Assembly: GCF_036365525.1 (NCBI RefSeq)
Contig: NC_090387.1
Coordinates: 76,941,300-77,005,299, forward strand
Origin: Heterodontus francisci
Taxonomy: Eukaryota
Reading direction: 5' to 3'
Length of the DNA: 64,000 nucleotides
Shown: positions 8,242 through 62,957 of the stretch, piece after piece
How the letters are laid out: the number at the start of each line of letters is the position of its first letter
How positions within the stretch are numbered: the stretch's first letter is position 1
Position numbers and translations under genes: made by a program
The notes under the pieces: generated by a model
The model's input: only the letters and a program-made list of their open reading frames with translations
The model's database searches: none
Told to the model about the DNA's origin: nothing

Positions 8242-8284
8242 ATGTTAGCGAGTATGGTTTTTCTGTGTCTGAGTATTCACACAG
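8242..8284 (+). CDS. Gene A leader exon ([14 protein letters not shown])
   Basis: ATG, hydrophobic core, phase-1 donor ACAG|gtacca. Confidence 0.75.
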
Positions 8285-11200
8285 GTACCATTGCATTCAT
8301 TGCCCCAGTTACTTTTGATTTATAAAATGCTGCGTTATTAATTTAGCGAACCGTATTTTCTCTATCTAGATTATGTTTTACTGCCTTCTCTCTTCTGCCT
8401 TCATGGTGTATCTGCTATAATTAACCTGTACTTGTTATATTTCTGACAGCTGCTGACCACACTTCGTTCAGTGTGTCTCAAGCGCCCAAAGAAGCGATTG
8501 TATCTACAGGGGGGAACATCACTTTCTATTGTATATTTCCCATCTCTCAGGAACATTCCTGGGTACAGGTATTATGGTGGAAACAGGGTGAGAATGAATA
8601 CTTGCGCAGAAGCGCAGAAGGGAGAAGACGGTTTGGTCTGAAAAGTAAAGCAAGCGGTTACTTTCAGTTACTGAGCGTAAATATCCAAGACTCTGGAGTG
8701 TATCACTGCGCAGTGATCCGTCAGGGAGTACTGCGAGGAAATGGAACTGGATCACATCTAATTGTGCATGGTAAGTGTGAAAATCAGGAGAGCGGGACCG
8801 CCCTAAATATATCGAACATAACACACGGGGATGTTTTGAGACTGTTCTATCGCATCGTTTTTTCTTTGTATAGACATGACTATTAATACATTTCTCCATA
8901 AGTTAAATTATCTATTCGTCTTCTCTGTATTGAACTGCTAATTAAACATTCAATATCACAGGCAGAGTACTGCAAAATGTATCAATCTTAACCAATTGGA
9001 CTGTAATTATAAAGGCAATTTATACAGCAGATGTCTGTCAGTGCACATTGGGAACAAATTCCAAGCATTTAATTGACTGAAAATCGTTTATGTTAATGTG
9101 ACTCAACCAACATGCACACGGCTCTTAGCCCAGTTTTGATGTTCTGTCTACCCCCATCACTGTCTTGGCTGTTTAATATTTCTGAAATGAAGTCTCACAT
9201 AATGATAGCTTTGGGGATTTGAAAGCAATTTTACAGCGAACTGTTGACGAATGGATTCGCTCAGCAAACTCGAGTTGGAAACCTAAAGTTATCAGCTCAC
9301 TAACTTCCAATAAATTAGACTATAGAGAGGGACTATGTTGCTGAAACCTCCTGAGGTCCAACTGTGAGTTGCGAGTTATTCCTACACCGATTAAGCCCTC
9401 CTTTTATCATTAGGGCACTGCCTATCTGTGCATATCAAACACGAAAAGACTTAACGCATCCACTTGCCACCAATGTTAATGGACTTAATTCTTTGTACTA
9501 TGATTAGCATTAAACATTGATTAGCAAATTGTTGCGACTTGTCTGCCATGGAACTCAAAGTCAGGTAAAATTGAACAGATGCCAATCGTTATGAGAGTCA
9601 TAGAGTAGTCGAGTTGTACAGCATAGAAACAGGCCCGTCGGCCCACTGCGTCCATGTCGACCATAATGCCTATCTATACTACTCCGACCTGCCTACATTA
9701 ATTCCATATCCTTTTATGCCTTGTTCATTCAAGTACCTGTCTAGATGCCTCTTAAATGTTGCTACTGTTCCTGCCTCCACAACCTCCTCTGGCAGCTCAT
9801 TCCAGATACCCACTATTCTTTGTCTGAAACTTTTACCTCTTTGATCCCCTTTAAACCTCCTCCCTCTCACCTTAAATCTATGCCCTCTAGTTTTAGTCAC
9901 CGCTACCATGAGAAACAGATTCTGGTTCTCTACCCTACCTATGTCTTTCATAATTTTATATACCTCTATCATGTCCTCTCTCAGCCTCCGTCGCTCCAGG
10001 GAAAACAGAGATAAGGACGAGATATGTTTAGATGATGTGTGCAGCATGAAAAGGACAGGATTGCGACTGCTGCTATTGTGAGAAAACGGGCCGAATGCAA
10101 ATCAGAATCATATTTAATGTCTCACAATGATACACAATAACTTGACTTTGCTCATTCTCATTTCCGCAGTGGCCCCAACCCCACTAAAGATTGTCTCTAG
10201 GACTCCACAAAGGAATACATCTGCGTTTCTCACTCTTGTGTGTGAAACGGCTTCGTTTTATCCGGAAAATTTCACACTCACTTGGTACAAAAATGGCATC
10301 GAAACTGCCTTTGGAATACATACCAATAAAGTACAGAACACTGAGGGACTGTACGAAGTTTCCAGTTCTTTGGTTGAAACGCAATCTGTCCCGAGCGACA
10401 CCAATTATAGCTGCTTGGTATCCCATGTCTCCCTCAGGACTCCAGCTGTTGTCATCCATACTGTTTCTAAGTCCAATCAAGGTAGGAGACCAATAATTCA
10501 AAAAGGAGAATCAGCTACCGTTAAATTGGTAAAGAGATATATCCTACGCTCTGTGCATGTTAATAGTCATGATGATAGTCTACAGAAATCCCATGGGAAA
10601 TATCAAAGAAGATATCACATTCATGTTTATACAATAGAAATAAAGCCGTTGTGTTGTAAAAGCTGGCGCACAGATATTCTCAGTCAAACCTTATTTGCTT
10701 TCAGATTCCTTTAATTGTTATATATATCTAATAAACAAGAGTTTATATTTTCTTTACTATAATATTGCCTTACCTGCATATTATTAATGCCTTTTTAGTT
10801 TCTATACTTCCTATTTTAAACTATTTTATTCTTTACTGTTGCACCAAAACTGTTAATAGGAGCTGCAGTCATGTTGTTTGCACCATGACTTCTTTCAATG
10901 TCGTTCCCGATCCTGCCCAATTTTCGGCTACTTCCAGTGCAGAGCTCTGCAATTAACACTTGCACATAGTTTACTCCTCACCCGTTCACGAAAGGTTTAA
11001 CTGGGATCTGCTTCATAAACTTCATGGAAACTGTGCCCGCGGTACACCGTGAAAGAATAATCAATGAGCCAACGCTTGTTGATCTCCAATTGTATCCTTT
11101 CTTTAGTAAGCACAGTTCAGACAATGAACTGATTTATAATCGATTGTTGTAATCCAGAATTTGTGCGGATAGCGAAGAAACGCATGTGAAAAATCGCCTT

Positions 11201-14200
11201 CAATTTTCTCAAACTATATGTTCATAAATAAGGTGGACAAGAACACGAACACGTCTTTTGGTTATGGAAAACTGATTCTGTTAGCATTCTAAATCTCCTA
11301 AACCGTGTTTAAGATCCTTAAACCGATAATCTGTTTCGCAGATTAATCAGGAATGTGTCATCAATTCGATACAGAAGTTACTTCAAATATTTTGTCTGAA
11401 AAATAACATTTTGCATTTAAACATTCTTTCGGTCGTTCCATACCGCGAGGTTACTGAATGCATCCTATAGCTTAAACAATAAACTTTTAGAAAACGTTTT
11501 TATCCAAAATCCGCCTTAACATTATTTTCCTATTAATCCCGCAGATAGTGTCCATAATTCATTTTCCTTCTGGACTGCAGTGTGTGCGGTGGCTGGATTG
11601 GCGTTTCTCGTGCTGATGATAGTCATTGGGATGCGGTGTCGACTGCAGAATAATGAAAGTATGATCCCCTTCAAAATCTTGGTTTGAGTACAAAACCTCA
11701 GCGTGAGTGACAGTATCCGAGTACACAGCAGAAAAAGAAATCGATTCAGAATTAGAGCCGAAAACTATGGGCCAGTCAGCCTAACATGGGCAAATGCTAG
11801 AGCCCATTATTAAGGAAGAAATAGCTGAACATTTAGAAAAGCTTAATGCAATCAAACAGAGTCAGCATGGTTTTGTGAAAGGGAAATCATGTTTGACAAA
11901 TTTGCTAGATTTCTTTGAGGATATAACAAGTAGAGTTGATAAAGGGGAACTTGTAGATGTGTATTTGAATTTCCAGAAGGCATTCGAACTGGTGTCACTA
12001 AAAGATTATTGCACAAGATAGGAGCTCACAGTATTGAAGGTAATGCATTAACATGGGTTGAGGATTCGTTAACAAACAGAAGACAGAGAATCGGGATTAA
12101 TGGGTTTTTTCAGGTTGGAAACAGGTAACTAGTGGAGTACCACAAGGATCAATCCTAGGACCTCAATTATTTTCTATTTATATTAATGACTTGGAGGAAA
12201 TGGCAGAGTGAAATATATCCAAATTTGCTGACGATACAAAAATAGTTGGGAGGGCATATTGTGATGAGGACATAAGGAATCTACTAGGGGATATACATAG
12301 GTTGAGTGAGTGGGCAAAAACTTGGCAGATGGAGTTTAATGTAGGAAAGCACGAGGTCATGCACTTTGGTAGGAAGATTCAAAAGGCAGACTATTATTTA
12401 AAGAGAGACTTCAAAATAGTGCAGCACATTGGGATCTGGGTGTTCTTGTGCATCAAACACAAAAGGTTAGCATGCAGGTGCAGCAAGTACTTAAGAAGGC
12501 AAATTAAATTTTTGCCTTTATTGCTGGGGGTTGGAGTTTCAAGATAGGGAAATCTTATTAAAACTGTACAAAGTGTTGGTGAGGCCGCACCGAGAGTATT
12601 GTGTACAGTTTTGGTCCCCATATTTAAGAAAGGATATACTGGCATTGGAGGCAGTTCAAAGCAGATTCACTCGGCTGATTCCTGGGATGAAGGAATTGAC
12701 GTATCAAGAACGGCTAAACAGGTTAGGCCTTTATTTGTTAGAGTATGGATGAATGAGGGCTGATCTTATAGAAATGTACAAGATTCTGAGGGGGTTTGAC
12801 AGGATAGATGTTGAGGACATGTTTCCACGAGTGGGGGAATCTCGAGCTAGCGGACATAGTTACAGAATAAAGGGACACTTATTTAAAACTAAGAAGCGAA
12901 GGAATTTATACTCTCAGAGGTAGTTAATGTCTGGAATTTTCTATCCCAGAGACTTGTGGAGGCTAGATCACTGGAAGTATTAAAGAGGAGGGAGATAGAT
13001 TTTTGAAATATCGGGGAGTTGAGGGCTATGACGAGCTGGCACGAAAGAGGAGTTGAGGCCTGAGGCAGATCAATCATGATCTTATTGAATGGCGGGGCAG
13101 GCATGAGGGGCCGAATGGCCCATTCCTGCTCCTATTTCTTATGTTCTTATGTTCTATGTTCTAAAGTTAATAAACAGTATTACTGTTTTCAGGGAGCACC
13201 GACTGTTCCGAATGCGTTTTATAACAGAGGAATGCTCACAGAATCGCAATAAAAATGAAAGCCATCTTCTGGATTTTTTTCCAAAAGAAATTACCCCTTT
13301 GCAACTGGATAAATGAAATGTACCCTGACATACAATCACTTTCCCGTCAGTTCCGTTGTGGATGCGCAATTAGTTCACTCCGGCCGGAGAATGGTTGTAC
13401 ACATAGGAACATAAGAAATAGAAGCAGGAGTATGCCATCTGGCTCCCCACTCCTGCTTCGCGAGACAATAAGATGGCTGTTCTTCTACCTCAAGTGAACT
13501 TTCCCATCGTATTTCTACATCCCTTGATTCCCGTAGTGTCCAAAAGATTCCCTTATTTTCCGAGAAAAATCTCCACCCCCCCACCCCCCCCCCCCCCCCC
13601 CCCACTCCCCCATAACAACAAAAAACACTGCTGATCGCTACAAAGGTTAGGATTTCAAACACTTTCGGCATAATCCGAAATTGAAAACCATATTCAGCTT
13701 TGTTCTGACTCTAGACAATTCTTCGCAATCTCATACATGGAAACTGAGTAAATATTACAATCTTTCAATATCATTAAATTTCTTTCGTTTCCAGGTAAAG
13801 AAGAATGTGACACGGGACCGAACCGCTCTGAGGAACTGGTATGTTCATTCATTGATCCCGGCAGCTTGTTGAAATATCAAGAAAGAACATATCATAATTA
13901 CACCAGAACATTTTACGTTAATTTACTAAAAGCATTTGTCCGATCTCAGTGACTAATCCATATCCCCCCTTGCGTTGCTGATAAAAAAAAAGTTAAATGG
14001 TGAGAAACCAAAACCGCCTATTTCATTGAAAATGTACCAAGGTAACAATTGCTCATAGATTCATCTATTCTTTGAAATTGAAAAGAAACTTTATGTTATA
14101 AAGCTGTCGCCCTTTTAAACATTTCTGCAACACTCTTGTAGCGTGAACATTGACAGGTTTACATATTAGAGTGGCCAGAACGTGATCACTTTTCGCACTT

Positions 14201-14741
14201 TTGTAATTATCAATGAATTAGGGTTTGTGCACTTGATCCCGAGTCCAGGTGAATCTGTGCAATGCCTGATCAGCGCTACGTAAAACTGTTGAAGGCAATG
14301 ATCTAGTCACATAACCAAACATTTTCTTTCCGGCCCGTGCAGGGAGCAACGGCTGAGGTCATGCATTATGCTGCAATCAATTTGAGCAGAACAAGCAAAA
14401 CTCCAAGACATAAACGTGAAGAGGTGAGAACAGTGTTCGCTCAGGTACAGCTGAGTAATAGATCAGAGAAACATAGATCACGAGTCAAATATCAACATAC
14501 ATTAGATAAGGCAGGGTGCATAATTTGTTTCTGTTGACTTTGACCTTGTGCTATACCTAAGTTTATTTGTGTGTGCTTCGAATGGTTGCTTTGAACAGCT
14601 GTCCAAAAAACTTGCAAAACGAGAAATTAACAATATTTCCAAACATTGTCCTTACAGATCCAACGAAGGGGAACCGGTAACGACCTGACGTACGCGACTT
14701 TAGCATTCACAGGCTCAGAAAAAAACGGAGAAATGCAATAA
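8242..14741 (+). CDS. Gene A: inhibitory VJ-C1 IgSF receptor with SIRP-like tail; 7 exons 8242-8284, 8450-8770, 10170-10481, 11545-11658, 13795-13838, 14343-14444, 14658-14741 (339 aa as assembled)
   Basis: All introns GT-AG with compatible phases (1,1,1,1,0,0). Leader, V, C1, uncharged TM, and a tail with MHYAAI and LTYATL. Confidence 0.85.
8450..8770 (+). CDS. Gene A V-set exon with germline-joined J-like G strand
   Basis: VSQAP...ITFYC...VLWWK...DSGVYHC...[11 protein letters not shown]; acceptor ttctgacag, donor G|gtaagt. Confidence 0.95.
9590..10010 (-). mobile_element. CR1 LINE 3' end in gene A intron 2
   Basis: [20 protein letters not shown]...TRGHRFK...[11 protein letters not shown], the CR1 ORF2 C-terminus. 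Confidence 0.9.
10170..10481 (+). CDS. Gene A C1-set exon
   Basis: [21 protein letters not shown]...GLYEVSSSL...[10 protein letters not shown]: canonical C1-set FYP, W and CxVxH motifs; acceptor ttccgcag, donor G|gtagga. Confidence 0.95.
11545..11658 (+). CDS. Gene A transmembrane exon (no charged residue in the TM)
   Basis: [38 protein letters not shown]; acceptor cccgcag, donor A|gtatga. Confidence 0.85.
11750..13160 (+). mobile_element. CR1 LINE 3' half (degraded RT) in gene A intron 4
   Basis: [40 protein letters not shown]; ends in a (TTCTTATG/TTCTATG)n tail. Confidence 0.92.
13795..13838 (+). CDS. Gene A cytoplasmic exon 1 ([15 protein letters not shown])
   Basis: Strong polypyrimidine acceptor tttctttcgtttccag, donor CTG|gtatgt; converts phase 1 to phase 0 as required. 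Confidence 0.7.
14343..14444 (+). CDS. Gene A cytoplasmic exon 2 (ITIM-like MHYAAI; TVFAQ)
   Basis: [34 protein letters not shown]; phase 0-0; alternative donor after 14423. Confidence 0.75.
14658..14741 (+). CDS. Gene A last coding exon (ITIM LTYATL); extends to 14829 if one A is removed from the A7 run
   Basis: [27 protein letters not shown]; acceptor ccttacag. Confidence 0.8.
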   Translation: MQRRGTGNDLTYATLAFTGSEKNGEMQ

Positions 14742-15101: not shown

Positions 15102-15107
15102 AATAAA
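15102..15107 (+). terminator. Candidate polyadenylation signal for gene A
   Basis: AATAAA about 360 nt after the stop codon, followed by a GT/T-rich stretch. Confidence 0.45.
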
Positions 15108-21493: not shown

Positions 21494-24400
21494 TTAATAA
21501 AGTGTTCTCTTACCTTCACTGTAAGTTGTTTTTACATGGTCCACAATAATACCCGTCATTGCAAGTATTATCAAAACACTCAGAGCAAACCGAGCAAGAA
21601 TGAGGAGCCTGATGCTGAACCTATGACCTACAATGTGGATTAAAACAAAATATAAAACGGCTGTACATAAGTATTATCAAGTTGAAGCAACAATGATTGG
21701 TTTATACAGAGGAATTGGCTAGTCTAAATCTTACGCCATATGTATTGATATTAAATCACTTAAATCGGAGTTAACCGTCTGAAAGAAAAAAACTCAAATT
21801 GAGCTCGACAGACTTGGCACTATGGTAACGCCGACGATGGTGCCTTCCACTTCCATAGAGGCGCTGCCGTTTCCAGCTATCACCTATATCTCAGGCAGTA
21901 GTCTTCTTTTCATGCCCAGATGGAGGTTGTATGTGAACATAAGACTCCGATGGCTGCTTTGGATCGAACTGGTGCGCCCTACACTTTCTGTCGAGCTTTA
22001 CTAGCGATAAAGATACAGAGATACTGAACGGGATCGTTCAATTTACTTCTCAGTGGTTAAGCAAAGCAACGGCTTCCCACTGGAACCCGTGAAAATAATT
22101 TGGGTGGGCTGGTGCAACTCGGGTATCCCCACCTCCGCGGTCATGGAGCACCGCCAATTCAGCTTGTTGCCCACCCACCTGTTTCTAGCCTGCCCTGTGA
22201 ACTCTATCAGGAGCTCGATCTTCGATTTCTGACGGCTCTCCCGGACAAGCACATGTGTAGGAAATGCCGTCAGCTCGAGTAGCTTGAGCTCCCGGTTTTT
22301 GGAGCTTGAGCAGCAGCTGGAAACATTGTGGCCCATCCGCGAAGCTGCGAATTTGGCGCATAGCACTTTTTCGATGTGGTCACCCCGCAGCTTAAGCGTA
22401 TGCATGTGGAAAAGGAATGGATGGCCACCAGGCAGTCATGAAGGACCACACAGGTAGTGCCGGAATCGCCTGAATGCATCTCACTCACCAAGCGATATTC
22501 CATTCTGAATACCGGTCAGAGTGATGGTGACTCTGGCGGTGACGGTGGGTGGGGGCGCGGGGGGGAGGGGTGTGGGGGGCGGGGGGGGGGGGGGTGTGGT
22601 AAGAGACTAGGAAGCAGGACCTCAAAAGTAGCAATCTCCAGATTACTCCCTGTTCCACGCATAAGTGAATATTGAAATAGAAAGGTACAGTAGATAAATG
22701 TGTGCCTGGAGAGATGGCCATGAGGAAGGGCTTTAGATTTCTAAGACATTGGGACCGGTTCTGGACGCGTGGGACCTGTACATGCTGAGCAGGTTGCACC
22801 GGAACCTACCAGGAAATGTTTGCTTGCAGGGCGATTTACTAGTGCTACTGACGAGAGTTTAAACAACTTAACAGGCGTGTGGAAAATACCAAGTATTATG
22901 ACAAAGGAAAAACAAGGTGTACCGAGAATTAAGAGAGCAGATAGCACGATAGCAGGAAATAGTTAGGAAATAGGTGGGGTCAAAGTAAGAGGGAATGTCA
23001 TAAGTTCTAAATTAGGTTTACCGTGCCAGCATGTGACTGCACGGACTGTGATAAATAAGGTTAGTAAGCTGCAGGCACAGATAGCCAAATGGACATATCT
23101 TGTTATGACAATAACAGAGATCTAGCTCAAAAAACGAGAGCAGTGGATAATAAATATTCATGGATACAAGGTGCTTAGGAAAGACAGAGAAGGAAAGGAA
23201 AGAGGAGGGGTAGCAATACTGATTAAGGAGAATATTACGGTGTTGGAGAGAGAGCATGCCCCAGAGTAAATAAGGACAAAATCTATATAGTTAGAGCTAA
23301 GAAACAAGGGCAGTACCATTCCAGTATTGGGTGTTTCCATAGGCCACCAACTAGCGGGAAAGATATAAAGGACCAAATTCGCAAGGCAATTACAGAGAGG
23401 TGCAAGAATTATAGAGTAGTTATAATGGGGGACTTTAATTAATTTTCTATAGTCACAACTGGATAAGGCAAGACTGCAGATGTAAGATCTGTTCCATTGG
23501 TTGTAGGATTGCTTAGACCTGTTTATCACATGCTGCTTCTGCTGTTTGGCATGCAGGTAGTCCTGTCTTATAGCTTCACCAGGCTGACACTTCATTTTAG
23601 GTATGCCTGGTGCTGCTCCTGGCATGCCCTCCTACACTAGTCATAGAATCAGGGTTGGTCCCCGAGCTTGATGGTAACGGTGGAATGGGGGATATGCCAG
23701 GCCATGATGCTAAAGGTTGTGGTCGAATACAATTCTGTTGCTGCTGATGGCCCACTGTGCCTCATTGAGGTATTAGGTGCCAGATTTGTTCGAACTCTCT
23801 CCCATTTAGCATGGTGGTAGTGGCACACTACCACCTCGAGGCAGCCAACATCCCCAAGTTATACACACTACTGAGCCTGCGGCGCTTGAGATGGCTTGGC
23901 CATGTGAGCCGCATGGAAAATGTCAGGATCCTCAAGGACCTATTGTACAGTGAACTCATCACTGGTATCAGACCCACCGGCCGTCCATGCCTCCGCTTTA
24001 AAGACGTCTGCAAGCGCGACATGAAATCCTGTGACATTGACCACAAGTGGTGGGAGTCAGTTGCCAAAGGAGAAGAAGAAGGGACTGGCACACAACATGT
24101 GGGACAAAGATAGCAGTCATTTCGACAAAGTTGGATCTATTAAGTAAAGCCAACACGGATTTATTAAGGACAAATAGTGTTTAACAAAAGTGATCAGTTT
24201 TCTTTTTTTTTGACAAGAATAAGCAAGACTAAAATAAAAGCAAAATACTGCGGATGCTGGAAATCTGAAATAAAAACAAGAAATGCTGGAACCACTCAGC
24301 AGGTCTGGTAGCATCTGTGGAAGGAGAAGCAGAGTTAACGTTTCGGGTCAGTGACCCTTCTTCGAAGTTCCGAAGAAGGGTCACTGAACCGAAACGTTAA

Positions 24401-27400
24401 CTCTGCTTCTCTTTCCACAGATGCTGCCAGACCTGTTGAGTGGTTCCAGCATTTCTTGTGTACATTATATAAGCAAGACTAAAACATTGGTTCATCCTCA
24501 GCTAGAGTATTGTGCTCATTTCTAGACAGCACACTTTCAGGGGGATGGAGTGTATTAGAGAGAGGGCAGCAAAGATTCACGAAATGGTTCCAGTGATGAG
24601 GAATTTCAGCAACATGGATAGATTGGCGAAGTTCTCTTTGGAGGAGACAAGATTAGAGGAGATTTGATAGAGGCATTCAAAATCATTAGGGTTCTGGACT
24701 GGGAAGAAAATCCTCCCATTGGTGGAAGAATCGAGAACCAGAGGACACCAGTTTACGGCGATTGGCAAAAGAAGCAACGGCAACATGAAGAAAAACGTTT
24801 TTACACCGGGAGTGATTAGGATCTGGAATGCCCTGCATGACAATGTGGTGGTAGCAGATTCAATTGAGGCCTTTAAGAGAGAATTGGATAATTATTTGAT
24901 CAGAAATATTTTTCTGTATTATGAGGAAAAGGCAGGGGACTGAGAATAGATGAGTTGCTGCTGCAGAGGGCCGCACGGGCATAACGAACTGAATGGCCTC
25001 CTTGTGTGTTATAACAATTTTAGGATTCAGTGATCCCACTCAAGTCGCCTAAATTTGATTCTCTTAATGGAAAACTAGCTCTCACCAGCACAGGGACTAA
25101 GTGGCAAATTGTCTTCATCTGCACAATAATTGCCATCATTCCTTGAATCTACTTTAGCAACTACAGTGGTTAAAATGTGTTCCGAACGTTTCTTGAGCCC
25201 TTATTTATTAGCCTGTGGACTCCAGATCCATGGTGGCAAACAGAGCGGATTTAGAAACAATTCGGCATGCCTCGCCACTTTACAATAAATAGAGCGCAGA
25301 GGTTGATGAAGGAAATGCTAGGAAGAGTTCATTTATATTTTTGCAAAAGTTCTACATGTGAAGCAAATTCAGGCTGACGTCATTCTGGTTGATTTTGACA
25401 AATGGTATGTCGGCCAGTCTCTCTTTGAGGATCAGTAGAATTCTAGCAGAGCTCTATCCGATTCAATTTAGGATCAATGCAGTCGAGACTGTTGATGTAC
25501 TATATAGAGGTGTCGCCTCTAGCAATAGCCGTAAATGTGCTAATACCATCAAATAGGGACAGAAGAGCACGAGATTAATAATATTCAAGGAAATCTGAGT
25601 ATTCGAGGAAATGCTCCTGCGCGATGTTCAGGGTGGCACAGTGGCGCAGTAGTTAGCACCGCAGCCTCACAGCTCCAGCGACCCGCGTTTAGTTCTGGGT
25701 ACTGTCTGTGCGGAGTTTGCAAGTTCTCCCTGTGATCGCGTGGGTTTCCTCCCACAGCCAAAGACTTGCAGGTTGATTTGTAAATTGGCCATTGTAAATT
25801 GCCCCTAGTGCAGGTAGGTGGTAGGGAATATGGGGTTAATGTAGGGTTAGTATAAATGGGTGGTTGTTGGTCGGCACAGACGTGGTGGGCTGAAGGGCCT
25901 GTTTCCGTGCTGTATCTCTAAATAAAAAGTAAAATAAAAATATGTTGGCGGTAGTTCCACGCTGCACATGCCCCAATCTTACCTTTCTGAACAATGTAGC
26001 TGACATTGGCGGGCACCAGAAGAGAGACATGATATACCAGGCAGGTATAAACAACTCCGCTAGGGACAGGTTGTGCTTCTTCCAAAAAACTGGAAACCTC
26101 ATATAGTCCCTCTGCGCTCCAGCTTTTCACAGTTTCTACTCCGGTCAAAATTTCGACACCGTCCCTTCGCCAGGAGGTTACTAACTGCTCCGGATAAAAG
26201 GCAGCTGTTTTACACTCGAGTTTCAGAGAAGTAGTTGAAATCCCTTCAACAGGAACGATTTCCAGCGGGGTGGGGGGAACTTAGAAAGAAATATATATAC
26301 AGGCAATTTTGTGTTCACTATAAAGAATCCCATCCTCATTTGCTTATGCTTGTTATGATGTTAAAGTCCTACTATCACATTAGTTACCCGTTAAAAAAAA
26401 ACTTTGTGTTTCATTTGTTTGATAAATCGTTTCACGGCGCAGAGCAAAATTGCAAATGACACACAAAAAGAATGATGCTCAGAGCTGGTAATATGCAGGG
26501 CGGCAATCGTCACTGTTCTGAATGGAAATATCAGATCCTGAAGCGGTATTGGTTTTGGCAGCAGTTGTTCCGTGTGAGAATTCCGTCCGAATTTATCGGA
26601 CAGGTCTGTACGGAACAGTGGAATCCTCTCTTGTTATTCAATAACAACCTTTGATGTATTAAACATTTTGCGTGTGTTTTCTTTTCAAATTTGGGTGTCT
26701 TTCGTATATCGCATGTGCTATAAACATTTAACGGTGAACAATGAGATGAAATTTGTTGCTAATATTTGCATTATATATCGAAATATTTTTATGTCTACAT
26801 ATGCTGCAGACAGAATGCTGTTATATGATTAGATCGAATCCGTTCACTAAAATTTACTACACAACATATTGATGTTTGTGGTGGAAATTTTAGATCGTGT
26901 AGCTTTCACGTAAGGAATTTTCTCCGGAGTGGGAATCGAATCTTGGAGATTTTTCAGATCATGTCGTTAATTATGGATTGCGGCGTAAATCACAACCTCC
27001 ATACAGATGAGGAAAAGCGAAAGTTAAATCATAACTCAGAATGCATGCCTTATATAATCTCTGAGTTTTTGCCTCTTCCAAGTCCATTCTGGCTTTTCTT
27101 TTTTCGTTCATGGGATGTGAGCGCCAGCATTTATTATCTGTTCCGAATTGCCCTTGGTCTGTTGAAAACCTTTTGCCTGCCGAAGATTCGGCTTATATAG
27201 AACATAGAACATTACAGCGCAGTACAGGCCCTTCGGCCCTCGATGTTGCGCCGACCTGTGAAACCATCTGACCTACACTATTCCATTTTTATCCATATGT
27301 CTATCTAATGACCACTTAAATGCCCTTAAAGTTGGCGAGTCTACTACCGTTGCAGGCAGAGCGTTCCACGCCCCTACTACTCTCTGAGTAAAGAAACTAC

Positions 27401-30316
27401 CTCTGACATCTGTCCTATATCTATCACCCCTCAACTTAAAGCTATGTCCCTTCGTGTTTGCCATCACAATCCGAGGAAAAAGACTCTCACTATCCACCCT
27501 ATCTAACCCTCTTATATCTTATATGTCTCTATTAAGTCACCTCTCCTCCTTCTCTCTAACGAAAACAAAGAACAAAGAAAATTACAGCACAGGAACAGAC
27601 CCTTCGGCCCTCCAAGCCTGCGCCGATCCAGATCCTCTATCTAAACATGTCGCCTATTTTCTAAGGGTCTGTATCTCTTTGCTTCCTGCCCATTCATGTA
27701 TCTGTCTAGATACATCTTAAAAGACGCTATCGTGCCCGCGTCTACCACCTCCGCTGGCAACGCGTTCCAGGCACCCACCACCCTCTGCGTAAAGAACTTT
27801 CCATGCATATCCCCCCTAAACTTTTCCCCTCTCACTTTGAACTCGTGACCCCTAGTAATTGAATCCCCCACTCTGGGAAAAAGCTTCTTGCTATCCACCC
27901 TGTCTATATATCTCATGATTTTGTACACCTCAATCAGGTCCCCCCTCAACCTCCGTCTTTCTAATGAAAATAATCCTAATCTGCTCAACCTCTCTTCATA
28001 GCTAGCGCCCTCCATACCAGGCAACATCCTGGTGAACCTCCTCTGCACCCTCTCCAAAGCATCTACATCCTTTTGGTAATGTGGCGACCAGAACTGCACG
28101 CAGTATTCCAAATGTGGCCGAACCAAAGTCTTATACAACTGTAACATGACCTGCCAACCCTTGTACTCAATACCCTCAAAACAACCTCAAGTCCCTCAGC
28201 CTTTCCTCGTAAGACCTTCCCTCCATACCAGGCAACATCCTAGTAAATCTCCTCTGCACCCTTTCCAAAGCTTCCGCATTCTTCCTATGAATATGAATCC
28301 TACAATCGTCTTTTACTCAAATGAATATGTGTCTGCTCAATCTATATTCACCGTTTAGCTTGAAGTAGAGCAAATTATGGCATTGCAATGTTTTGTTTTT
28401 AACAGTTCATGACAATTTCCTTAATATATTTCCTCTAGATTTTTGCTTACCGAATTTGTAGTAATAGCAAGATGTTAAATTAATGGCATTATTATTTAGA
28501 AAAATATTAAGACCTTTATTCTCAGCAGCATCCTATTAACGGTCAAACAAAGCTCAAAATTCCTCCTTTCTTTTATCCTGGATTTTTTTTTAGCTAGAAT
28601 ATATAGCGTGCTAGAATTTCCGTGGAGTAGAGGAGGGCGGTGTTCTCCTACTCTTCTACCATAACGCCAGTCTGCGATTGTTGGAGTGTATATGTAAATC
28701 GTGAATTGGAAAGTTCAGTGATATCCTCCCTACATTTAACATGCTGTGAGAGTATAACCGAAAGTCCAATTGGCAGATTAACAGAGGTCCAAATAGGTGC
28801 ATTGGGTTCCTATACTCTCCTGCAAGCTCAAGGAATTGGGATGGAACCTGGCAATGAAGCTAAAATCAACACCACACCGCTCAGTAGATTGTAAGATTTC
28901 TTTGTAAACTGAGATTAGCAGCCTCAAACAAGATCTCGCTGGACACAAGTGCACAGCTTAAATATGGAGATAGGAAGAAGAATAGGCCACTCAGCCCCTC
29001 GACCCTGTCCCGTCATTCAGTTAGATCATGGTTGATTTTTACCTCAAATCCATTTGTCCACTATCCGTTGGTAAGCCAACCTAACAAAAATATATTCACC
29101 TTAAGCTTGGAAATGCTATGTGTCCCACCTTCCACAGCGTTCTTTGGGAGAGAGTTCCAAATGTTGGATAATACTGCAGATAAAAATATTAGGCTGGCAA
29201 GTTCAAGCAGTTAGGCCAATCATTTCCTATTGTATAAAATATCCAGGTTGTAGCAGGACGCTGTTCTTCTGAACTTATAATTAAGGCACCTTGTTGGGGT
29301 GGAATAGATAGCCTTTAATGTGAAATAGAAGACTTGATCTTGAGGTTTTAAAATTATTTCTATTGTCACTCCTTGGCACCGTTATTTTGGTGAGAAGGTG
29401 TCTGGCCATCTAATTTGATTAATTAATTTGAAGCTAAGATTTAAACATTTATACTATTTGGGAAACATGTCTTTGTAACAATTGCAACTGTACTTCAAAA
29501 AGAACTCATCGGATGTAAAGTATTTTTGAATGTCATGACGACAATCTGGTGGATGAAATTGGTCTCGGGCAAAAGCCCAAATCGGATATTAATGAATCCG
29601 TGGCCGTTGCACACCGGAATCAACGGAAAAGAAAATCCAGAGAAGTGTAGAACGAATTTTCTATCACCAATTTTTCGTCCAGCGATAAAAGTTCAAATTA
29701 CGTATATCACACACAGCTGAAAAACACCCACTCCCCGGTACAATGACACTTACCATACACAGTAATCTGGGAGCCACTTCCATTTCCAGCAAAGTTTTGT
29801 GAATATCTTACTTTACAGTAATATACTCCGGAGTCTGCGACACTCGCATTTAGGACATGAAACGAACCACTTCCCTTTGCCACATTAAATCGCTTTCTGC
29901 TGTCTGGTTCTAGAAACGAATCATTGCCGCGTCTCCACCAATAAATATCAGGAGCATCTTGAAATATGGGAAATATGCAGAACATGGAAACATTTGCACC
30001 TCTGGCCACTTTCAAGAATTTAGGGAATTGATCCACTTTGCTTGAAGTTACTTCAGCGGCTATCATAAAATGAAAAGAATGATGATATAGTGTGCATATT
30101 TTATAGAAAGAACAAATATTAGAACTTAGAATTTTAAAACATCACTAAATTGATAACGTAACTTCAAAGACGGAAGAAAGAAATGTTCACAAAACCTGAG
30201 GAACTTTGATAACATCAGCTTTTTATCGATAAGCGTGGAACTGCAAGATAAACAAACACACCTTTGCAAAAAATTCCCAGAAAAAATATACACGAAATCC
30301 AGGAGTTGACCATCAT
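21494..30316 (-). CDS. Gene B: activating-type VJ-C1 IgSF receptor; exons 30316-30262, 30059-29754, 26279-25983, 21627-21514 (then an unidentified small exon, or read-through to the stop ending at 21494)
   Basis: All four exons are open and in phase 1 with GT-AG boundaries; TM contains Arg; short tail. Confidence 0.82.
21514..21627 (-). CDS. Gene B transmembrane exon with intramembrane Arg
   Basis: GHRFSIRLLILARFALSVLIILAMTGIIVDHVKTTYSE; paralogous to 62851-62957; acceptor cacattgtag, donor G|gtaaga. Confidence 0.85.
22190..23450 (+). mobile_element. Degraded CR1 LINE (ORF1 remnant and endonuclease) in gene B intron 3
   Basis: CRKCRQLE and SRTSKVAISRLLPVP match ORF1 at 320-1267; GGGVAILIKE-type endonuclease remnant. 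Confidence 0.8.
23460..23825 (-). mobile_element. LINE fragment of the same family as 45630-47450
   Basis: Shared sequence GCATGCAGGTAGTCCTGT...GCTTCACCA with 47400-47445. Confidence 0.6.
23828..24070 (+). mobile_element. RTE-clade LINE 3' fragment
   Basis: RRLRWLGHVSRM...KDLLYSEL...RPTGRPCLRFKDVCKRDMK, the typical RTE ORF C-terminus. Confidence 0.85.
24100..25020 (+). mobile_element. CR1 3' fragment interrupted by a Penelope palindrome
   Basis: QHGFIKDK, SRTRGHQF and IRIWNAL motifs. Confidence 0.75.
24235..24468. mobile_element. Palindromic Penelope pseudo-LTR insertion with 16-bp target-site duplication (TSD)
   Basis: Inverted arms centred near 24365; ATAAGCAAGACTAAAA at 24219-24234 and 24469-24484. 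Confidence 0.85.
25632..25940 (+). mobile_element. HE1/V-SINE-like SINE just past the gene B C1 exon
   Basis: Same head, core and tail as 15583-15880. Confidence 0.85.
25983..26279 (-). CDS. Gene B C1-set exon
   Basis: VPPTPLEIVP...LKLECKTAAFYPEQLVTSWRRDG...GLYEVSSFL...YTCLVYHVSL; donor G|gtaaga. Confidence 0.93.
27197..28290 (-). mobile_element. Two nested CR1 3' ends in gene B intron 2
   Basis: Younger copy (about 27569-28177; [15 protein letters not shown]...) splits an older CR1 3' end; AAAACAA at 27562-27568 and 28178-28184. Confidence 0.88.
29754..30059 (-). CDS. Gene B VJ exon
   Basis: KVDQFP...VSMFC...IYWWR...DSGVYYCKVRYSQNFAGNGSGSQITVY; donor G|gtaagt. Confidence 0.95.
30262..30316 (-). 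CDS. Gene B leader exon (MMVNSWISCIFFLGIFCK)
   Basis: 55-nt exon, same length as the gene D leader; donor AAAG|gtgtgt. Confidence 0.75.
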
Positions 30317-55200: not shown

Positions 55201-56750
55201 GCAAACCCCGGGGTTCGAAAGCCCACGAGCTTGGTGATTCCTTGCAGCATACGCCAAGTGTGTCGCTCAGAATGGCGGTGAATCCTTGGTGTTGCACATA
55301 TTTTTGTTGGGTATTTTTTACAGAGATGTTTGTGTTTATCTTACAGCTCCATACTATGGAAAACATCTACTGTTAAAAAAAATCTCTTTTTTGAACATTT
55401 TTTTTCATTGTGTCGTTAATTCTTTTAATTTTCTTTATTTTTAATATCTAAGTTCTAATATGTGTTCTTGTTCTATAAAGTATACACATTACATCAGCAT
55501 TCTTATTTATTTTCTGGTAGTCGTTGAAGTGATTTCAAGCAAAGTGGATCGATGTCCTAAACACTTGAGGGTTGCCAGTGGTGCAAATTTTTCCAACTTC
55601 TGCACCCAATCTTTATTGGAGATTCGACGAGGAAAGGTTTCTAGAGCCAGACATCAGAAAGTGCGTTAATGTGTAAAAGGGACGTCTTCACTTTACGTTC
55701 TGAATGCGAGTGCTGCCGGCATTACTGGAGTGCATTACTGTAAAGTAAAACATCATCAAAAATCTATTGAGATGGAACTAGCTTCCAGATTCTGTGTACG
55801 GTAAGTGTCATTGCAATGGGGAGTGGGAGATTTACAGCTGTGGGCAACATATGTAATCTGATCTTTAATCGCTTTTAAACGAAAACTGGTGATAGCAAAT
55901 TTGTTCTACACATATCAGGGTTTTCTTTTCCATTGACCCTGGAGTACAACGGCTGCCGATTCGCTATCGCCCATTTTGCGCTACTACCCAAAATCAATTT
56001 CACTCGATTCACTAGTCTCACGACATTCCAACGTGTATTTGATTCAGCGAATGCGTTTTGAAGTTCAGTTACAATTATTTTGGAGGCAAGATACCGAATT
56101 AGTATAAACGTTTAAAGCTTGGCTTGGAATTAATAAATGGGATTAGGTGGCCAAGTAGTTTCTCACCAAAATACCAGTGCTAAAGGGCGACAATCGACAG
56201 AATTTAACATCTCCTTGGACAGGGGCTAAATGACCTACTCTTGTTCCTATGCCCACAGTATATGTTTCATACTTGTGCCAATAATAACGTTTTTGAGACG
56301 CTAAACTCATTTCACAAAAGGTTTGCTGTAACCTATCGAGAGGGGATGTATTGATCTTACTTCAATGCTGGATTCCACCCAAGTCCTAGGAGGGAAGGTA
56401 CTCAATTATCCTGTTTGAAGCTCTGCTGTATGCCAATTCGACTTTTTTATACACTCACAACCCGTTAAGTACTGGCAGGATTTCACCGAAGCATTCTATA
56501 AACGCCTGGGCTCACATATTTGTAATTTACGATTCTCATTTACAATCCACCAACCCGCCGCGGAAGTTGCCGCAAGAGATCAAGTGAACATAGCCTCCCA
56601 CCTCCTCTGCGAAAATCCTGCCGCATTTCAAATTCTGCCGAATATAGTAGATACGTGGAAAAAGAATGTAAGAATACTGAGCTTTGTTGGACAACCACAC
56701 AATAAAGGCTAACATAATGTCCAACTTAATAGGCCACAGATTTAACAATT
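52230..56750 (+). repeat. Inverted segmental duplicate of the gene B upstream region, leader, V exon and part of intron 2 (about 33350 to 28500)
   Basis: Collinear diverged matches, e.g. 52231-52350 to the reverse complement of 33230-33350, 53220-53260 to 32300-32335, and 55180-55215 to 30385-30420. Confidence 0.85.
55272..55800 (+). pseudogene. Gene C: leader plus VJ pseudogene, no C1 or TM exon found
   Basis: Leader (55272 to about 55325) has a 1-nt deletion and a GT>AT donor loss; V exon 55521-55800 is 280 nt versus 303-306, with an internal deletion and frameshifts; homology stops inside intron 2. Confidence 0.88.
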
Positions 56751-56829
56751 TGCGATTACTACAAAGACCGGGAAGTAAAACTTAAGAAAATATTGTCAGG
56801 AGATTGTAATAAACTGACTAAACAATGTA

Positions 56830-57313: not shown

Positions 57314-57327
57314 GCTTCTGATATTTA

Positions 57328-58475: not shown

Positions 58476-58530
58476 ATGTCGGTGAGAGCTACAGTTCAGT
58501 GCATGGTTGTTCTCGGCATGGTTTGGCCAG
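58476..58530 (+). CDS. Gene D leader exon (MSVRATVQCMVVLGMVWP)
   Basis: ATG in AAGATGT context, hydrophobic core, donor CCAG|gtatta. Confidence 0.75.
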
Positions 58531-61500
58531 GTATTATACTTGTTATATGCTGCCATTTCAGAATACTTAAGTCCTAGTTTAGAAGATTGTACAACTTTTA
58601 TACAGTTCAAAATTAAAAATTGCACTTCAACAATTCCATTACTGGTGCTTCTTAATTGTTCTTATATTATGTTTCTCTTAGTTATTTTTCATTATCTGAT
58701 GTATGCAACTGTAACCACCGTTCTTGTTTTTTTCCCCCTAATAGCCGCTAAAGTAACTTCGAACAAAGTGGATCAGTTCCCTAAATTCTTGAAGGTTGTC
58801 AGAGGTGCGAGTGTTTCCATGCGCTGTACATTTCCGCTATTTCAAGATACTCCCGATGTTTATTGGTGGAAACGCGGCGAGGAATCGTTTCTGGAACCAG
58901 ACAGCAGAAAGCGATTTAATGTAAAAAAAGGAAGTAGTTCATTTGGTGTTCTGAATGCGAGTGTTGCAGACTCCGGAATGTATTACTGTAAAGTAAAACA
59001 TCAAGAATCTATTGGAGATGGAAGTGGCTCTCAGCTTACTGTGTACGGTAAGTATCACTGTAGCGGGACTAGAAGATTCTCAGCTGCGTGCGATATATGT
59101 AATTTGTTCTTTTATCACTGGACGAAAACCTACAGGTAGCGAATTCGTTTTAACCATCTCCGAATTTTCATTTCCATTGACCCCGGTGTAAAACGGCCGG
59201 TTATTCGCTATCGCCCGTTTTGCACTACTGCACAAGACCAATTTCACTCAGTCGTTGGCCTCATAACATTCCTAAGTTATTTTCATCGAATGCACGCTTT
59301 TGAAGTGCACTTACAATTGTTCGTTGAGTCAAGATACTTAAAAAGTATAACTGTTTAAACCTTAGTTTGAAATTAGTCAATGAGGTACGATGGCCAGGTT
59401 CCTTCTCACCAAAATAACTGTGTCAAGGTGGACAATGGTAATAATTTAAACACCTCCTAGGTCAAGCCTTTTATTCAACATTAAAGACCATATACCCTGG
59501 TGCTTTGATTATAAACTCAGATGAACACTTTCTTACTACAGCCCTGAATATTTCACACACTAGCTAATTTTCCGCCTCACTGTTTGAAATTACAAATCTA
59601 ATACTTTCTGTAACGAATTGCCAGAAATTTCAGGTGGGTAGATTTTTGTTTTGAATGGGTATGAAGGGAATGGAATTAAGTGGGACAAATGGAGTTGAGG
59701 AACAGAATCTAAATGAATGGCAGAGCAAGCTCGAGGGACTGAATGGTCTACTCCTGATCCTATTTCAGCAATTTATGCTGTGCACTTGTGTCCATCGATA
59801 ACTTACTTGAGATACCAAACTCTTTTCATAAATGAAGCCTAAAACCCATTGGAAGGGGAAGCGTTGATCTTGCCTTCAATGCTGGATTCCACCTCAAGTC
59901 CTCTAGCTTGCAGGACAGTGAAGGTACCCAATTCCGGTGTTTGAACCTCTGTTCTACGCCAATTGTACTTTCTTGTATACACTCACAACCCGCCAAGTAT
60001 TGGCAGGATATCACAGAATATCTCTATAAACGCCTGGGCTCCCATATTTGTAATTCATGATTTCCATTTACAATCCTCCACAGCCGGGGGAAGTTACAGC
60101 AAGATATCAAGAGAACACAGCCCTCCATTTTCTCCACGGAAATCCTGCCACATTATGTATTATAACTAAAGCAGATCCATGGTTGTAAATGCAGGAATTC
60201 TGAGCCTTTGTTGAGCTGTCCACACGGTGCTTAAGGGAATAAACTCAGCATAATGTTGTCAGTTAATAACGTCCTTAATTTAATATTTTGCTATTACTGT
60301 AACGTCGGAAAAGTCAACGTGGAAAGAAAAAAAATGCAAAGGAGATTGTTTGTAATAAACTGGCAAAACAATGCAAACCTATTAGAGGGCTTTTACTTCC
60401 AGTTAAATAGTGACTGTATATCGAACGGACATAGGTTCGGCATTAGTAAATAGTAGACGTAGGAATGATATAAGCACAACCTCCTCCAGGCAAAAAGTGT
60501 TCAACAGAACGAATGGACCCGGGGAAGGGCAAAATCCCTGAAATTATGTAAGACATGCATTTTGTGTTAGGATTCCCCATTCTGTTTCCCTTAGGTGTAC
60601 AGCTGTTGTGATATTCACAAAGATATAAAATTACCAGTAAAACCCTTTCACGACGTGAAAACGAGTCCAGTCCTTAGATCCCCCTCTGCAGAAAATTCCT
60701 TAGGTGAAAGCTGAAATCTCCCCCACGGACACTTGAAATGTTGTATAATCAATTGTAATGCACGAATTCTAATCTCTATATATAACAATATCCTGTCATA
60801 AACATGGATATTTGAAAATGAAACATGGAAAATTAGAATGTGCTCCTTTAAATTAAAAACATTTTTCCTCTCTCTCCATTAAAGTTCCCCCGACCCCCCT
60901 GAAAATCGTTCCGATTGAAAGAATTTCAGCGACTACTCTGAAACTTGAGTGTAAAACGGCTGCCTTTTACCCGGAGCATTTAGGAATTTCCTGGTTAAGA
61001 GATGGTGTCGAAATTCTGAGCGGAATAGAAACTGTGAAAAACAAGAGCGCGGAGGGACTTTATGAGGTTTCCAGTTTTTTGGAAGAAGTCCAAACAGCCC
61101 CGGAAAAAGTTGTTTACACCTGTCTGGCATCTCATATCTCTCTTCTGGTACCTGCCAGTGTCAGCTATATCGTCAATCAAGGTACGATTGGGGCAGATTC
61201 TGTGTGGAACTTTAGCGACCATCTTTCAAAGTTCTGATGAAAGGTCGCAGAGCTGAAATGTTAACTCTGCTTCTCTCTCCACAGATGCTGCTTGACCTGC
61301 TTAGTATTTCCAACATTTTCTGTTTTTATTTTATCTTTCAAGGGTATCTCCTCGATGATCCGGATTTCTTTCAACATTATTAAACTGTTCCTGCTCGATC
61401 CATGCATCGACGCCATCAGCACATCTCGGCCTATTAGTAGAAGTGACATCTTCATAAAGTTAATCAATAGACTAGAGAGCATTGAATCGAAAATGAACCG

Positions 61501-62957
61501 GGTAGAATTCTGTCTACAACGCGACTGCCCCCCACCCCCACCCCATCCCGCCCCCAGCCAGAGCTGTGTCCATTTATCATTTTCCATTTCTCCATGAATG
61601 GCATAATCCTGAATTTGTTTCAAAAGCTTCGCATGCAGACCCGTTGCAAATACCTTCTAATACCTGCATTTACTTCATTCAGTGAATGCCTTCTCTCCGT
61701 AAGTTGCTGTAAATTGGTGGCGCATGACAAATTGTTTCTAAATCTAATCTGGGGCGAGTTATGGTATTGGACCCTTTGCACCAACAAGTAACAATTCAAG
61801 AAAAGTCCAAAATAGTTATTATCACTGTAGATGTAAAATTAAGGAATGGTGGAAATTACTATGCAAGAGGAGACAATTTGGCACTTGGTCCTTGTGTTTG
61901 TGAGAACGATTCTCCCATAATGGGAGTCAACTCAGGCTACTCGCGTGGAAATCAGGAATATTAACGTCAATACGTCGTCCCGTTACAGTTTGCAGTGCCG
62001 CCGAGACAGCCTGATCGGCATGAAGCTAAATCTGTGATCAAGGAGCGGCGGGGGTGGGTGCCAAGGTTGTAATGTCTCAGGTTATGGGCACTTCTGCTTT
62101 TCCTACCCACCCAAAAACATTTTAGAAGTTACCTACTCAGGTAATATTCTATCACTACTGCTAATAAAACTAGCCAGAGAATGCAGGGCACCCCAGTTCT
62201 AACATAAAATGGATATAGGGATCATATGTTCATCTCAGAACCACAACCTGGACAAACGATAAGCATGCTATTTGAAAATAAATCTCCAGCCTCCAGCAGC
62301 AGGCTTTTTCCCAAGGTGGAAGACATGATGGTAGACGCTGACATGGCGCTCAGTCTGCCGAGTAGATTGTGGCGCTATTATAGCACCTTTAATGCGATTT
62401 TGGCAATTTAAAATCGAACCCTATGATTTAAACTAACTATTCAATGAACCCCTTTCATCTGTATAAGCCAATCACAATTGCTTCTATTCTATAATTGTTA
62501 AATACAGCAAGATTACTTCTTTATTTTAATCCTACATTGCAGGTCGCAGTTTCAGCTTTGTGATTGCTGACTTATTCTGTTTTTTTTTATAATTCTTGCA
62601 TTGACGGCCCTCTGTGGAAATGGAAGACGCCATAGTCGGCGCTAACAAAGTGCTAAGTCTGTCCAGCTCAATTTGAGGCTATTATGAGACGGTTAACGCC
62701 GATCTAACCAATTTCGTTTTAATTCCTTTGAAGTAGGTTTTAAACTAGCGATTTAATGGACCTCATTCCTCTGTATCAAACAATAATTGTTTCAATTTAA
62801 TAATATTTATGTACAACCGTTTTATATCTTGGTTTTAATTCACATTGCAGATCATGGTTTCAGCATCATGTTTGCTCGGCTAGTTCTGAGTTTTTTGATA
62901 AGTCTTGCACTGATGGGTATTATTGTGGACCATGTACAAATAACGTCAATAACGTAA
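58476..62957 (+). CDS. Gene D: activating-type VJ-C1 IgSF receptor; exons 58476-58530, 58745-59047, 60885-61181, 62851-62957 (253 aa if the TM exon reads to its stop)
   Basis: Phase-1 GT-AG exons, all open; TM contains Arg; tail about 8 aa. Confidence 0.85.
58745..59047 (+). CDS. Gene D VJ exon
   Basis: KVDQFP...VSMRC...VYWWK...DSGMYYCKVKHQESIGDGSGSQLTVY; donor G|gtaagt. Confidence 0.95.
60885..61181 (+). CDS. Gene D C1-set exon
   Basis: VPPTPLKIVP...LKLECKTAAFYPEHLGISWLRDG...YTCLASHISL; donor G|gtacga. Confidence 0.93.
61228..61335 (+). mobile_element. Penelope pseudo-LTR fragment
   Basis: GTTCTGATGAAAGGTC...TGAAATGTTAACTCTGCTTCTCTCTCCACAGATGCTG. Confidence 0.75.
62543..62605 (+). pseudogene. 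Partial, frameshifted duplicate of the gene D TM exon
   Basis: Acceptor tacattgcag retained; aligns to 62851-62915 with a 1-nt loss at the Arg codon; reads GRSFSFVIADLFCFFL* (stop 62590-62592). Confidence 0.7.
62851..62957 (+). CDS. Gene D transmembrane exon with intramembrane Arg
   Basis: DHGFSIMFARLVLSFLISLALMGIIVDHVQITSIT*; acceptor cacattgcag; a gtaaga donor overlaps the stop codon. Confidence 0.85.

Follow-up and report, generated by a model that had tools for sequence, protein, structure and literature searches.

Gene content of the locus

We analysed a stretch of 64,000 nucleotides (hereafter the window, in whose own numbering all positions are given) from the horn shark Heterodontus francisci (assembly GCF_036365525.1, contig NC_090387.1, positions 76,941,300 to 77,005,299 of the forward strand), in which three genes (A, B and D) encode predicted membrane receptors composed of a leader, one variable-type immunoglobulin (Ig) domain with a J-like end (VJ), one C1-set Ig domain and a transmembrane (TM) segment. 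An earlier note, made from the letters of the window alone, had proposed three spliceable genes and one pseudogene of this leader-VJ-C1-TM plan, and both searches that we carried out bore it out: tblastn with four Ig-like open reading frames as queries against the window, and a scan at full sensitivity in which the six frames of the window were searched with hidden Markov models (HMMs) of the family V and C1 domains, agreed on exactly three exons for each of V and C1, plus a single V relic disrupted by frameshifts; nothing further came below E 0.2 in the six-frame scan. The V exons (8450-8770, +; 30059-29754, -; 58745-59047, +) matched the family V HMM with E-values of 1e-44 to 1e-49 and the C1 exons (10170-10481, +; 26279-25983, -; 60885-61181, +) the family C1 HMM with 1e-47 to 1e-49, while Pfam recognized V-set and C1-set domains in the exons above its curated cut-offs. 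The motifs from which the note had read the homology of the C1 exons (xPTPL[K/E]IV, FYPE and EGLYEVSS) were each found.

The three genes and the V relic are packed within 55 kb, and all splice sites of A, B and D are canonical and in phase 1. The VJ region is in each case one uninterrupted exon that ends in a J-like GxG[ST]xLxV motif and is spliced directly to C1; because V and the J-like motif share one exon, the window genes are non-rearranging. The exons were searched one by one, database proteins identical to the gene models being used in place of joined models; exons were joined only for the reading-frame check of D, and the last exon of B was read with one phase base prefixed. The features are as follows:

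8242..8284, +: gene A, leader exon; ATG at 8242, phase-1 donor; agrees with the N-terminus of database protein P0001
8450..8770, +: gene A, VJ exon; Pfam V-set, V HMM E 2e-44; 100% match to P0001; ends in the J-like NGTGSHLIV
10170..10481, +: gene A, C1 exon; Pfam C1-set 1.8e-10, C1 HMM E 2e-49
11545..11658, +: gene A, stalk and neutral TM exon; 100% match to P0001 residues 226-264
13795..13838, +: gene A, cytoplasmic exon 1; by comparison with P0001
14343..14423, +: gene A, cytoplasmic exon 2; holds the tyrosine motif MHYAAI
14658..14741, +: gene A, last coding exon; tyrosine motif LTYATL at 14685-14702, stop at 14739-14741
30262..30316, -: gene B, putative leader exon; MMVNSWISCIFFLGIFCK, phase-1 donor; from sequence reading only
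29754..30059, -: gene B, VJ exon; Pfam V-set, V HMM E 9e-49; 76% identical to D
25983..26279, -: gene B, C1 exon; Pfam C1-set, C1 HMM E 6e-47
21514..21627, -: gene B, TM exon with arginine; reads GHRFSIRLLILARFALSVLIILAMTGIIVDH...; 62% match to the TM of P0016
20738..20844, -: gene B, last coding exon; reads GNERLIISASAARKPTLGKK..., without inhibitory motif; P0016 and P0017 have a homologous tail exon
58476..58530, +: gene D, coding part of the leader; ATG at 58476; the transcribed exon begins by 58322
58745..59047, +: gene D, VJ exon; Pfam V-set 9e-11, V HMM E 2e-49
60885..61181, +: gene D, C1 exon; Pfam C1-set, C1 HMM E 3e-49
62851..62950, +: gene D, TM exon with arginine; reads DHGFSIMFARLVLSFLISLALMGIIVDHVQITSI; spliced on both sides in contigs
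~55518..55810, +: V pseudogene of the B/D type; tblastn and HMM; three frame pieces with frameshifts and stops

Inhibitory-type gene A

Gene A (+ strand) follows the order leader-VJ-C1, neutral TM and a cytoplasmic tail with an immunoreceptor tyrosine-based inhibition motif (ITIM). The neutral TM and ITIM tail attributed to it by the earlier note are apparent in the sequence and in the identity of the gene model to P0001 (XP_067906051, 332 aa, Heterodontus francisci), to which NCBI gives the name 'CD276 antigen homolog'. The splice junctions of A rest on this database model, as the read contigs described below cover gene D only; in runs X1 and X2 gene A reached a word share of 14%, which fits its exon content. 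In an AlphaFold2 model built on a 77-member alignment (mean predicted local distance difference test score 81), V, C1 and the TM helix (223-265) were confidently placed, and the best Foldseek matches for the model were antibody light chains and T-cell receptor (TCR) beta chains, to which the PDB is heavily biased.

The tail contains one canonical ITIM (LTYATL) and one near-ITIM (MHYAAI). Comparison with P0022, P0026 and P0045 revealed that a run of seven A (14719-14725) shifts the frame of the last exon relative to its orthologues, and that the remainder of the orthologous tail (...VVYTEAKIN, an ITSM-like motif, i.e. resembling an immunoreceptor tyrosine-based switch motif, and the last tyrosine motif) is open in the other frame to 14829. 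The site is read through in orthologues from Heptranchias and Mustelus and in one horn shark paralogue, the Heptranchias orthologue (P0022) continuing '...LTYATLALTGSVKRAQCKNNERSTDYAELQ...AVYSEARIK', and six A instead of seven would preserve the orthologous frame. The frameshift is either a shortened-tail allele of the horn shark or a homopolymer error of the assembly. We also observed a second GT donor at 14444, 21 bases past the annotated donor of cytoplasmic exon 2, which, if used, would add VRTVFAQ, i.e. the orthologue motif RTVYAQ (as seen in P0022) with Y replaced by F.

Arginine-TM genes D and B

Gene D (+ strand) shows the order leader-VJ-C1-TM, with a conserved arginine in the TM segment (...IMFARLVL...) and no ITIM in the window. 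Its splicing was followed over 58000-63999 in contigs from three sequencing runs of one horn shark sample, which are presumed to be RNA. Contig depth was ~15-36 on the exons as compared to 0-4 in the introns (most intron bins being zero), an exon-only cover that forms an RNA-like pattern, though the RNA nature of the runs is guessed. Contigs spanning the leader-V, V-C1 and C1-TM junctions were looked for and all three were found. The leader-V joint (58530/58745, GT..AG) is matched exactly, with 140 nt on the shorter side, by a contig that joins 58322-58528 to 58743-58882 with zero mismatch; the V-C1 joint (59047/60885, GT..AG) has 25 nt and the C1-TM joint (61181/62851, GT..AG) 28 nt on the shorter side, the contig of the latter being exact over 62849-62950. 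Because this TM contig extends for 28 nt that match nowhere in the window, the TM exon is spliced again at its donor (AAC/GTAAGA). The spliced contigs therefore indicate that the arginine-bearing TM exon is used and that C1 is followed by TM without a second C1 in between.

The NCBI model of D (P0011, XP_067906052) joins C1 straight to a last exon beyond the window and omits the TM exon; it represents at best an alternative isoform. Since the TM exon of D measures 100 nt (as compared to 114 nt in B), D enters its last exon in a different frame from B, and this difference may be the reason why the automatic model dropped the exon. Within the C1-TM intron of D, positions 61200-61400 correspond to a very high-copy repeat (summed contig depth ~100,000 in all three runs, against ~30 on the exons).

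Gene B (- strand) repeats the plan of D, with an arginine in its TM segment (...LILARFAL...), no ITIM and large, repeat-rich introns, and is intact in all exons (20738-30316). The accession numbers of A and D (XP_067906051 and XP_067906052) are consecutive although B lies between them, so that B is apparently unannotated. The ratios of nonsynonymous to synonymous substitution rates between B and D (0.39 for the V exon, 0.30 for the C1 exon) speak for purifying selection on this predicted gene. The earlier note had ascribed to both B and D a TM arginine and almost no tail: the arginine is present in both, but the tail of B is ~45 aa long, and the last exon of D lies beyond the window.

A chondrichthyan receptor family

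Searches with the exon queries and with a 13-member profile yielded 63 named proteins, every one of which (63/63) is chondrichthyan: they derive from sharks (Heterodontus, Heptranchias, Scyliorhinus, Chiloscyllium, Hemiscyllium, Mustelus and Carcharodon), rays (Mobula, Hypanus, Hemitrygon, Pristis and Narcine) and a chimaera (Callorhinchus). Twenty further or repeated members checked by record were likewise all chondrichthyan, and the attribution to a cartilaginous-fish system, put forward in the earlier note, agrees with every relative that has a named source. A HMMER search returned 198 proteins below 1e-30, the best 150 of which are family members or giant multi-Ig proteins, most of them without taxon.

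Family proteins measure 270-380 aa and comprise only leader, V, C1, TM and tail. The claim that one V is combined with exactly one C1 rests on the HMM scan of the window, on the C1-TM joint of D and on the relatives, as the V-C1 plan was recovered in 101 of the 123 family-size proteins. Only two (P0021 from Chiloscyllium plagiosum and P0071) show V-C1-C1, and the remaining minor architectures look like models fused from adjacent genes. The two C1 domains of P0021 are near-identical and in tandem; an exon may have been duplicated recently, or the assembly or the model may be at fault. The horn shark chromosome of the window (99.65 Mb) carries at least 14 members, and the neighbouring accession numbers XP_067906041-081 suggest that the genes are adjacent.

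Within this one family (40-90% identical) the automatic NCBI names, at least eight in number, conflict with one another and include SIRP alpha-like, SIRP beta-1-like, tapasin-related, NCR3LG1-like, CD276 homolog, PD-L1-like, Ig lambda-like, TCR beta-like and MHC (major histocompatibility complex) class II chain-like. We found no paper that describes the family in the searchable full-text literature, which leaves out most subscription journals; among the sources without mention of it are papers on UrIg, on the MHC of cartilaginous fish and on the structure of SIRP alpha, a SIRP review of 2026 and a review of fish immunity of 2019. In databases it is known under inconsistent automatic names only. 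The system was suspected beforehand of being little described, and this literature search agrees.

Subfamilies and inhibitory/activating pairs

To assess the relations among members, trees of 85 rows were built for V and for C1 (family members only, no outgroup, short alignments), and only their starred branches were used. The V clade of gene A has 35 rows (support 98) and takes in every chimaera sequence of the tree except one; the clade with B and D numbers 21-22 rows (support 99), from sharks and rays. As judged from these trees, A and B/D belong to two old subfamilies. With only ~40% identity in V (~48% in C1) to B/D, gene A does not form a pair with B or D within the window.

Inhibitory and arginine-TM members are both present in the A clade and in the B/D clade, and recur across several clades and species. 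A neutral TM with an ITIM tail was observed in 25-29 members; in P0016, P0017, P0027, P0034, P0041, P0046, P0055, P0078 and others the helix has a conserved arginine in its outer part and is followed by a short tail. The clearest horn shark case is D itself: D (P0011) and P0012 are 92% identical in V and opposite in TM and tail, P0012 having an ITIM tail (D vs P0012 and P0013: V 90-92%, C1 81-82%; D vs P0012-P0014: V 78-92%), and the inhibitory partners of D are located outside the window on the same chromosome. Opposite tails are also joined to identical V domains in P0036 and P0041 of Callorhinchus and to near-identical ones in P0038 and P0072. P0017 and P0019 of Scyliorhinus have nearly the same ectodomain, P0019 being an incomplete model with a TM of the inhibitory D type and no ITIM tail in view. 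Close ectodomains on opposite signalling modules, by which paired activating and inhibitory receptors are defined, are therefore found in this family, and so is the genomic clustering of such receptors. The pairing proposed in the earlier note holds for the family (near-identical V, opposite tails) but not for its choice of partners, A and B/D being too far apart in V.

Outside the window, the V and C1 domains of a further horn shark protein (P0029, XP_067905822) differ in their grouping, C1 with the D-type genes and V with a distant clade, which suggests exon shuffling between subfamilies.

Remaining content of the window

The V pseudogene (79% nucleotide identity to the V of D) was found with neither a C1 nor a TM exon beside 55518-55810. 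A faint likeness to the F-strand region of the family V (SSAFDLLDINLSHSRMHQC vs SSSFGVLNASVADSGMYYC, HMM E 0.25) was noticed at 4675-4750; this could be the remnant of an old V or a chance match, and was left out of the count. The remainder of the window is transposon debris (a GDSL-domain ORF1, a weak match to a SCAN domain and further open frames that Pfam does not recognize) and thus contains no synteny marker gene. The debris includes an intact open frame of 315 aa with a GDSL-type (esterase-like) domain (320-1267, -) and reverse transcriptase-like fragments, recognized by eye and without Pfam match, in the introns of A and B and between the genes.

Relation to known receptor systems

The closest named family is SIRP, as gauged by NCBI names, language-model features, PDB ranks and tail motifs. 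Like SIRPs, the shark proteins possess a V-set domain with a J-like G strand (Pfam V-set together with GxG[ST]xLxV) followed by C1-set sequence, and have paired members with very similar ectodomains, clusters on one chromosome and multi-tyrosine ITIM tails on the inhibitory forms. On the other hand, they have one C1 (one C1 exon per gene, and a direct C1-TM joint in D) where SIRPs have two, an arginine in the outer third of the helix instead of the lysine of SIRP beta1, and a larger expansion, with no fewer than 14 genes on a single chromosome of the horn shark. In SIRP beta1, a mid-helix lysine pairs with DAP12. We describe the shark genes as probably working like SIRPs and do not file them as SIRPs; neither two C1 domains nor a TM lysine were found in them, and the V profile alone prefers V domains of the TCR beta and VNAR type. 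SIRPs have been proposed as kin of the antigen-receptor precursor (PMC2785349).

UrIg and UrIg2 share with the shark family a single-exon VJ, a split leader, C1-type domains and their occurrence in cartilaginous fish, and UrIg2 is among the best PDB matches of the family C1 profile. UrIg combines VJ with three C1 domains and is a secreted, disulfide-linked dimer, and UrIg2 combines VJ with at least nine C1 domains (PMC12227049). The family described here, in contrast, has one C1, is membrane bound and includes ITIM and arginine-TM pairs, which are absent from UrIg/UrIg2; identity with them was rejected on the number of C1 domains (one, plus a TM exon) and on secretion.

A non-rearranging VJ with a GxGT-type J motif and a TM arginine also typifies NKp30 (NCR3), whose arginine pairs with adaptors bearing immunoreceptor tyrosine-based activation motifs (ITAMs). 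NKp30 differs, however, in having no C1, its VJ being followed directly by stalk and TM, and no known inhibitory partner family, and identity with it is ruled out by the C1 exon that sits between V and TM in all three genes. Germline VJ domains in multigene clusters, with ITIM and charged-TM forms, are likewise features of teleost NITR and hagfish APAR. NITRs, which belong to ray-finned fish, consist of V alone or of V and an I-type domain and APAR of a single V, and neither is known to have a C1-set domain. The second domain of the shark proteins is C1-set by Pfam and all members with a named source are chondrichthyan, which rules out identity with NITR; a 2019 review of fish immunity reports no NITRs for cartilaginous fish (PMC6795676).

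TCR chains and Ig light chains have the same ectodomain of one VJ and one C1 and are the best structural matches, and TCR chains further resemble the activating shark forms in their short tail and in having a basic residue within the helix. The differences lie in the shark VJ, which is one exon, so that there are no recombination signal sequences and no rearrangement, in a stalk without the cysteine for an interchain disulfide, and in the existence of ITIM members; a rearranging TCR or Ig light chain, in which RAG joins separate V and J segments, is ruled out by the uninterrupted VJ exon spliced to C1. The place between SIRP/NKp30 and the rearranging antigen receptors, which the earlier note gave to these genes, is an architectural statement and not a phylogenetic result.

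Interpretation and alternatives

Taken together, these observations point to the window being part of a cluster of chondrichthyan germline-joined VJ-C1 type I membrane receptors that are paired and SIRP-like in their working, a reading to which we assign a probability of roughly 0.8. In such receptors, which we would expect to be expressed in leukocytes, the VJ domain would bind ligand. In gene A and in P0012-type members, tail tyrosines (LTYATL and others) would then be phosphorylated and recruit SH2 phosphatases, while in B and D the arginine in the outer third of the helix would pair with the membrane aspartate of an ITAM adaptor (of the FcR gamma, CD3 zeta or DAP12 type). ITIM receptors and activating receptors with a TM arginine or lysine are the established basis of these phosphatase and adaptor steps. 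CD47 as a ligand would be a guess by analogy only.

Several observations weigh against this reading. Neither SIRP d1 nor NKp30 stands out by the V profile alone, as the PDB search with the V profile and the V-only search of the ESM Atlas gave generic V-set and TCR-like matches. The tail of gene A is curtailed by the frameshift relative to its orthologues, and no database protein is identical to gene B (best match 78%). The V-C1 and C1-TM joints of D stand on short anchors (25 and 28 nt) in runs that are presumed RNA, and the contigs cannot establish a single full-length D transcript. As the final exon of D lies beyond the end of the window, its tail is not readable here, and the TM-less NCBI model raises the point that D may have a secreted isoform.

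A first alternative, which we regard as possible if somewhat doubtful, is that the genes are true co-orthologues of tetrapod SIRP alpha/beta that have lost the second C1 or have kept an ancestral two-domain form. The commonest NCBI names in the family ('tyrosine-protein phosphatase non-receptor type substrate 1-like' or 'signal-regulatory protein beta-1-like') favour it, as do the nearest named ESM Atlas clusters by language-model features, which are SIRP alpha (0.97 and 0.96, taken as a lead only), and the PDB sequence ranking, in which SIRP alpha and gamma come near the top despite thousands of antibody chains (SIRP alpha 2nd and 16th). Moreover, the J-like motif lacks F/W as in SIRP, and the tail of P0022 reads VHYAAL, TVYAQ, LTYATL, TDYAEL and AVYSEA; with four or five such tyrosine motifs, the full orthologue tails resemble that of SIRP alpha. 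Co-orthology is opposed by the single C1 in place of two, by an arginine near the outer end of the helix in place of the mid-helix lysine of SIRP beta1, and by the V profile, which places TCR beta, NCAM and VNAR ahead of any SIRP d1. Furthermore, there were zero non-chondrichthyan proteins among the named matches and the 20 unnamed ones checked, most of the best 150 being without taxon.

It is unlikely, in our view, that the family represents an independent ancient lineage of non-rearranging VJ-C1 receptors, nearer to the TCR/Ig ancestor or to UrIg-type relics than to SIRP, in which the SIRP likeness would stem from common VJ-C1 ancestry and convergence of the tails. The order VJ-C1-TM(basic)-short tail is the plan of a TCR chain, the best PDB matches of V are TCR beta V and shark VNAR, the top match of the C1 profile is UrIg2 (with a score summed over three domains), and by fold the model comes closest to Ig light chains and TCR beta; the presence of the family in chimaera and elasmobranchs gives it an age of at least the crown chondrichthyans. 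However, the PDB ranks are skewed, both because antibody and TCR entries are so abundant there and because scores are summed over several domains, and the stalk lacks an interchain cysteine. A bolder form of this proposal, which we deem quite improbable, would see in the family the surviving membrane-bound, non-rearranging VJ-C1 receptor ancestral to TCR and Ig chains (and not a SIRP offshoot), with activating members that keep an ancestral coupling of the CD3 zeta/FcR gamma type and with tetrapod SIRPs as a later three-domain derivative.

That the proteins are ligands or chaperones, as the automatic names would have it (CD276/B7-H3, NCR3LG1/B7-H6, PD-L1-like, tapasin-related, MHC class II chain-like, Ig lambda-like), is scarcely credible: apart from these names the idea can draw on the V plus C-type domain of the B7 family and butyrophilins, but the names are mutually conflicting within one 40-90% identical family, names of the B7, butyrophilin and tapasin type are ruled out by a Pfam C1-set match well over C2-set_3, by the J-like GxG[ST]xLxV at the end of V and by the leader-V-C1-TM-tail plan, ITIM tails or a helix arginine are present, there is neither a tapasin N-terminal domain nor an MHC peptide-binding domain, and the VJ in one exon, hence not rearranging, contradicts the Ig lambda name. 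B7 proteins are defined by an IgV joined to a C2-type IgC domain and lack a J motif, and in tapasin a large N-terminal domain precedes the Ig domains.

Biological meaning

Apart from antigen receptors, MHC molecules and a few relatives, no proteins are known to have C1-set domains. Here a multigene family with the one-V-one-C1 plan of TCR and light chains is present in every chondrichthyan group sampled, and germline VJ domains joined to C1 have been considered the main clues to the target of the RAG transposon (PMC2785349, PMC12227049). On the practical side, the family carries at least eight conflicting automatic labels, and at least one of its models (gene D) is without its TM exon. Its ITIM and arginine-TM members make it possible to ask which adaptors and phosphatases serve receptors of this kind in the oldest jawed vertebrates. 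Furthermore, the family lets one ask whether SIRPs started as two-domain receptors, and it bears on which innate paired receptors sharks have in place of KIR, LILR or NITR.

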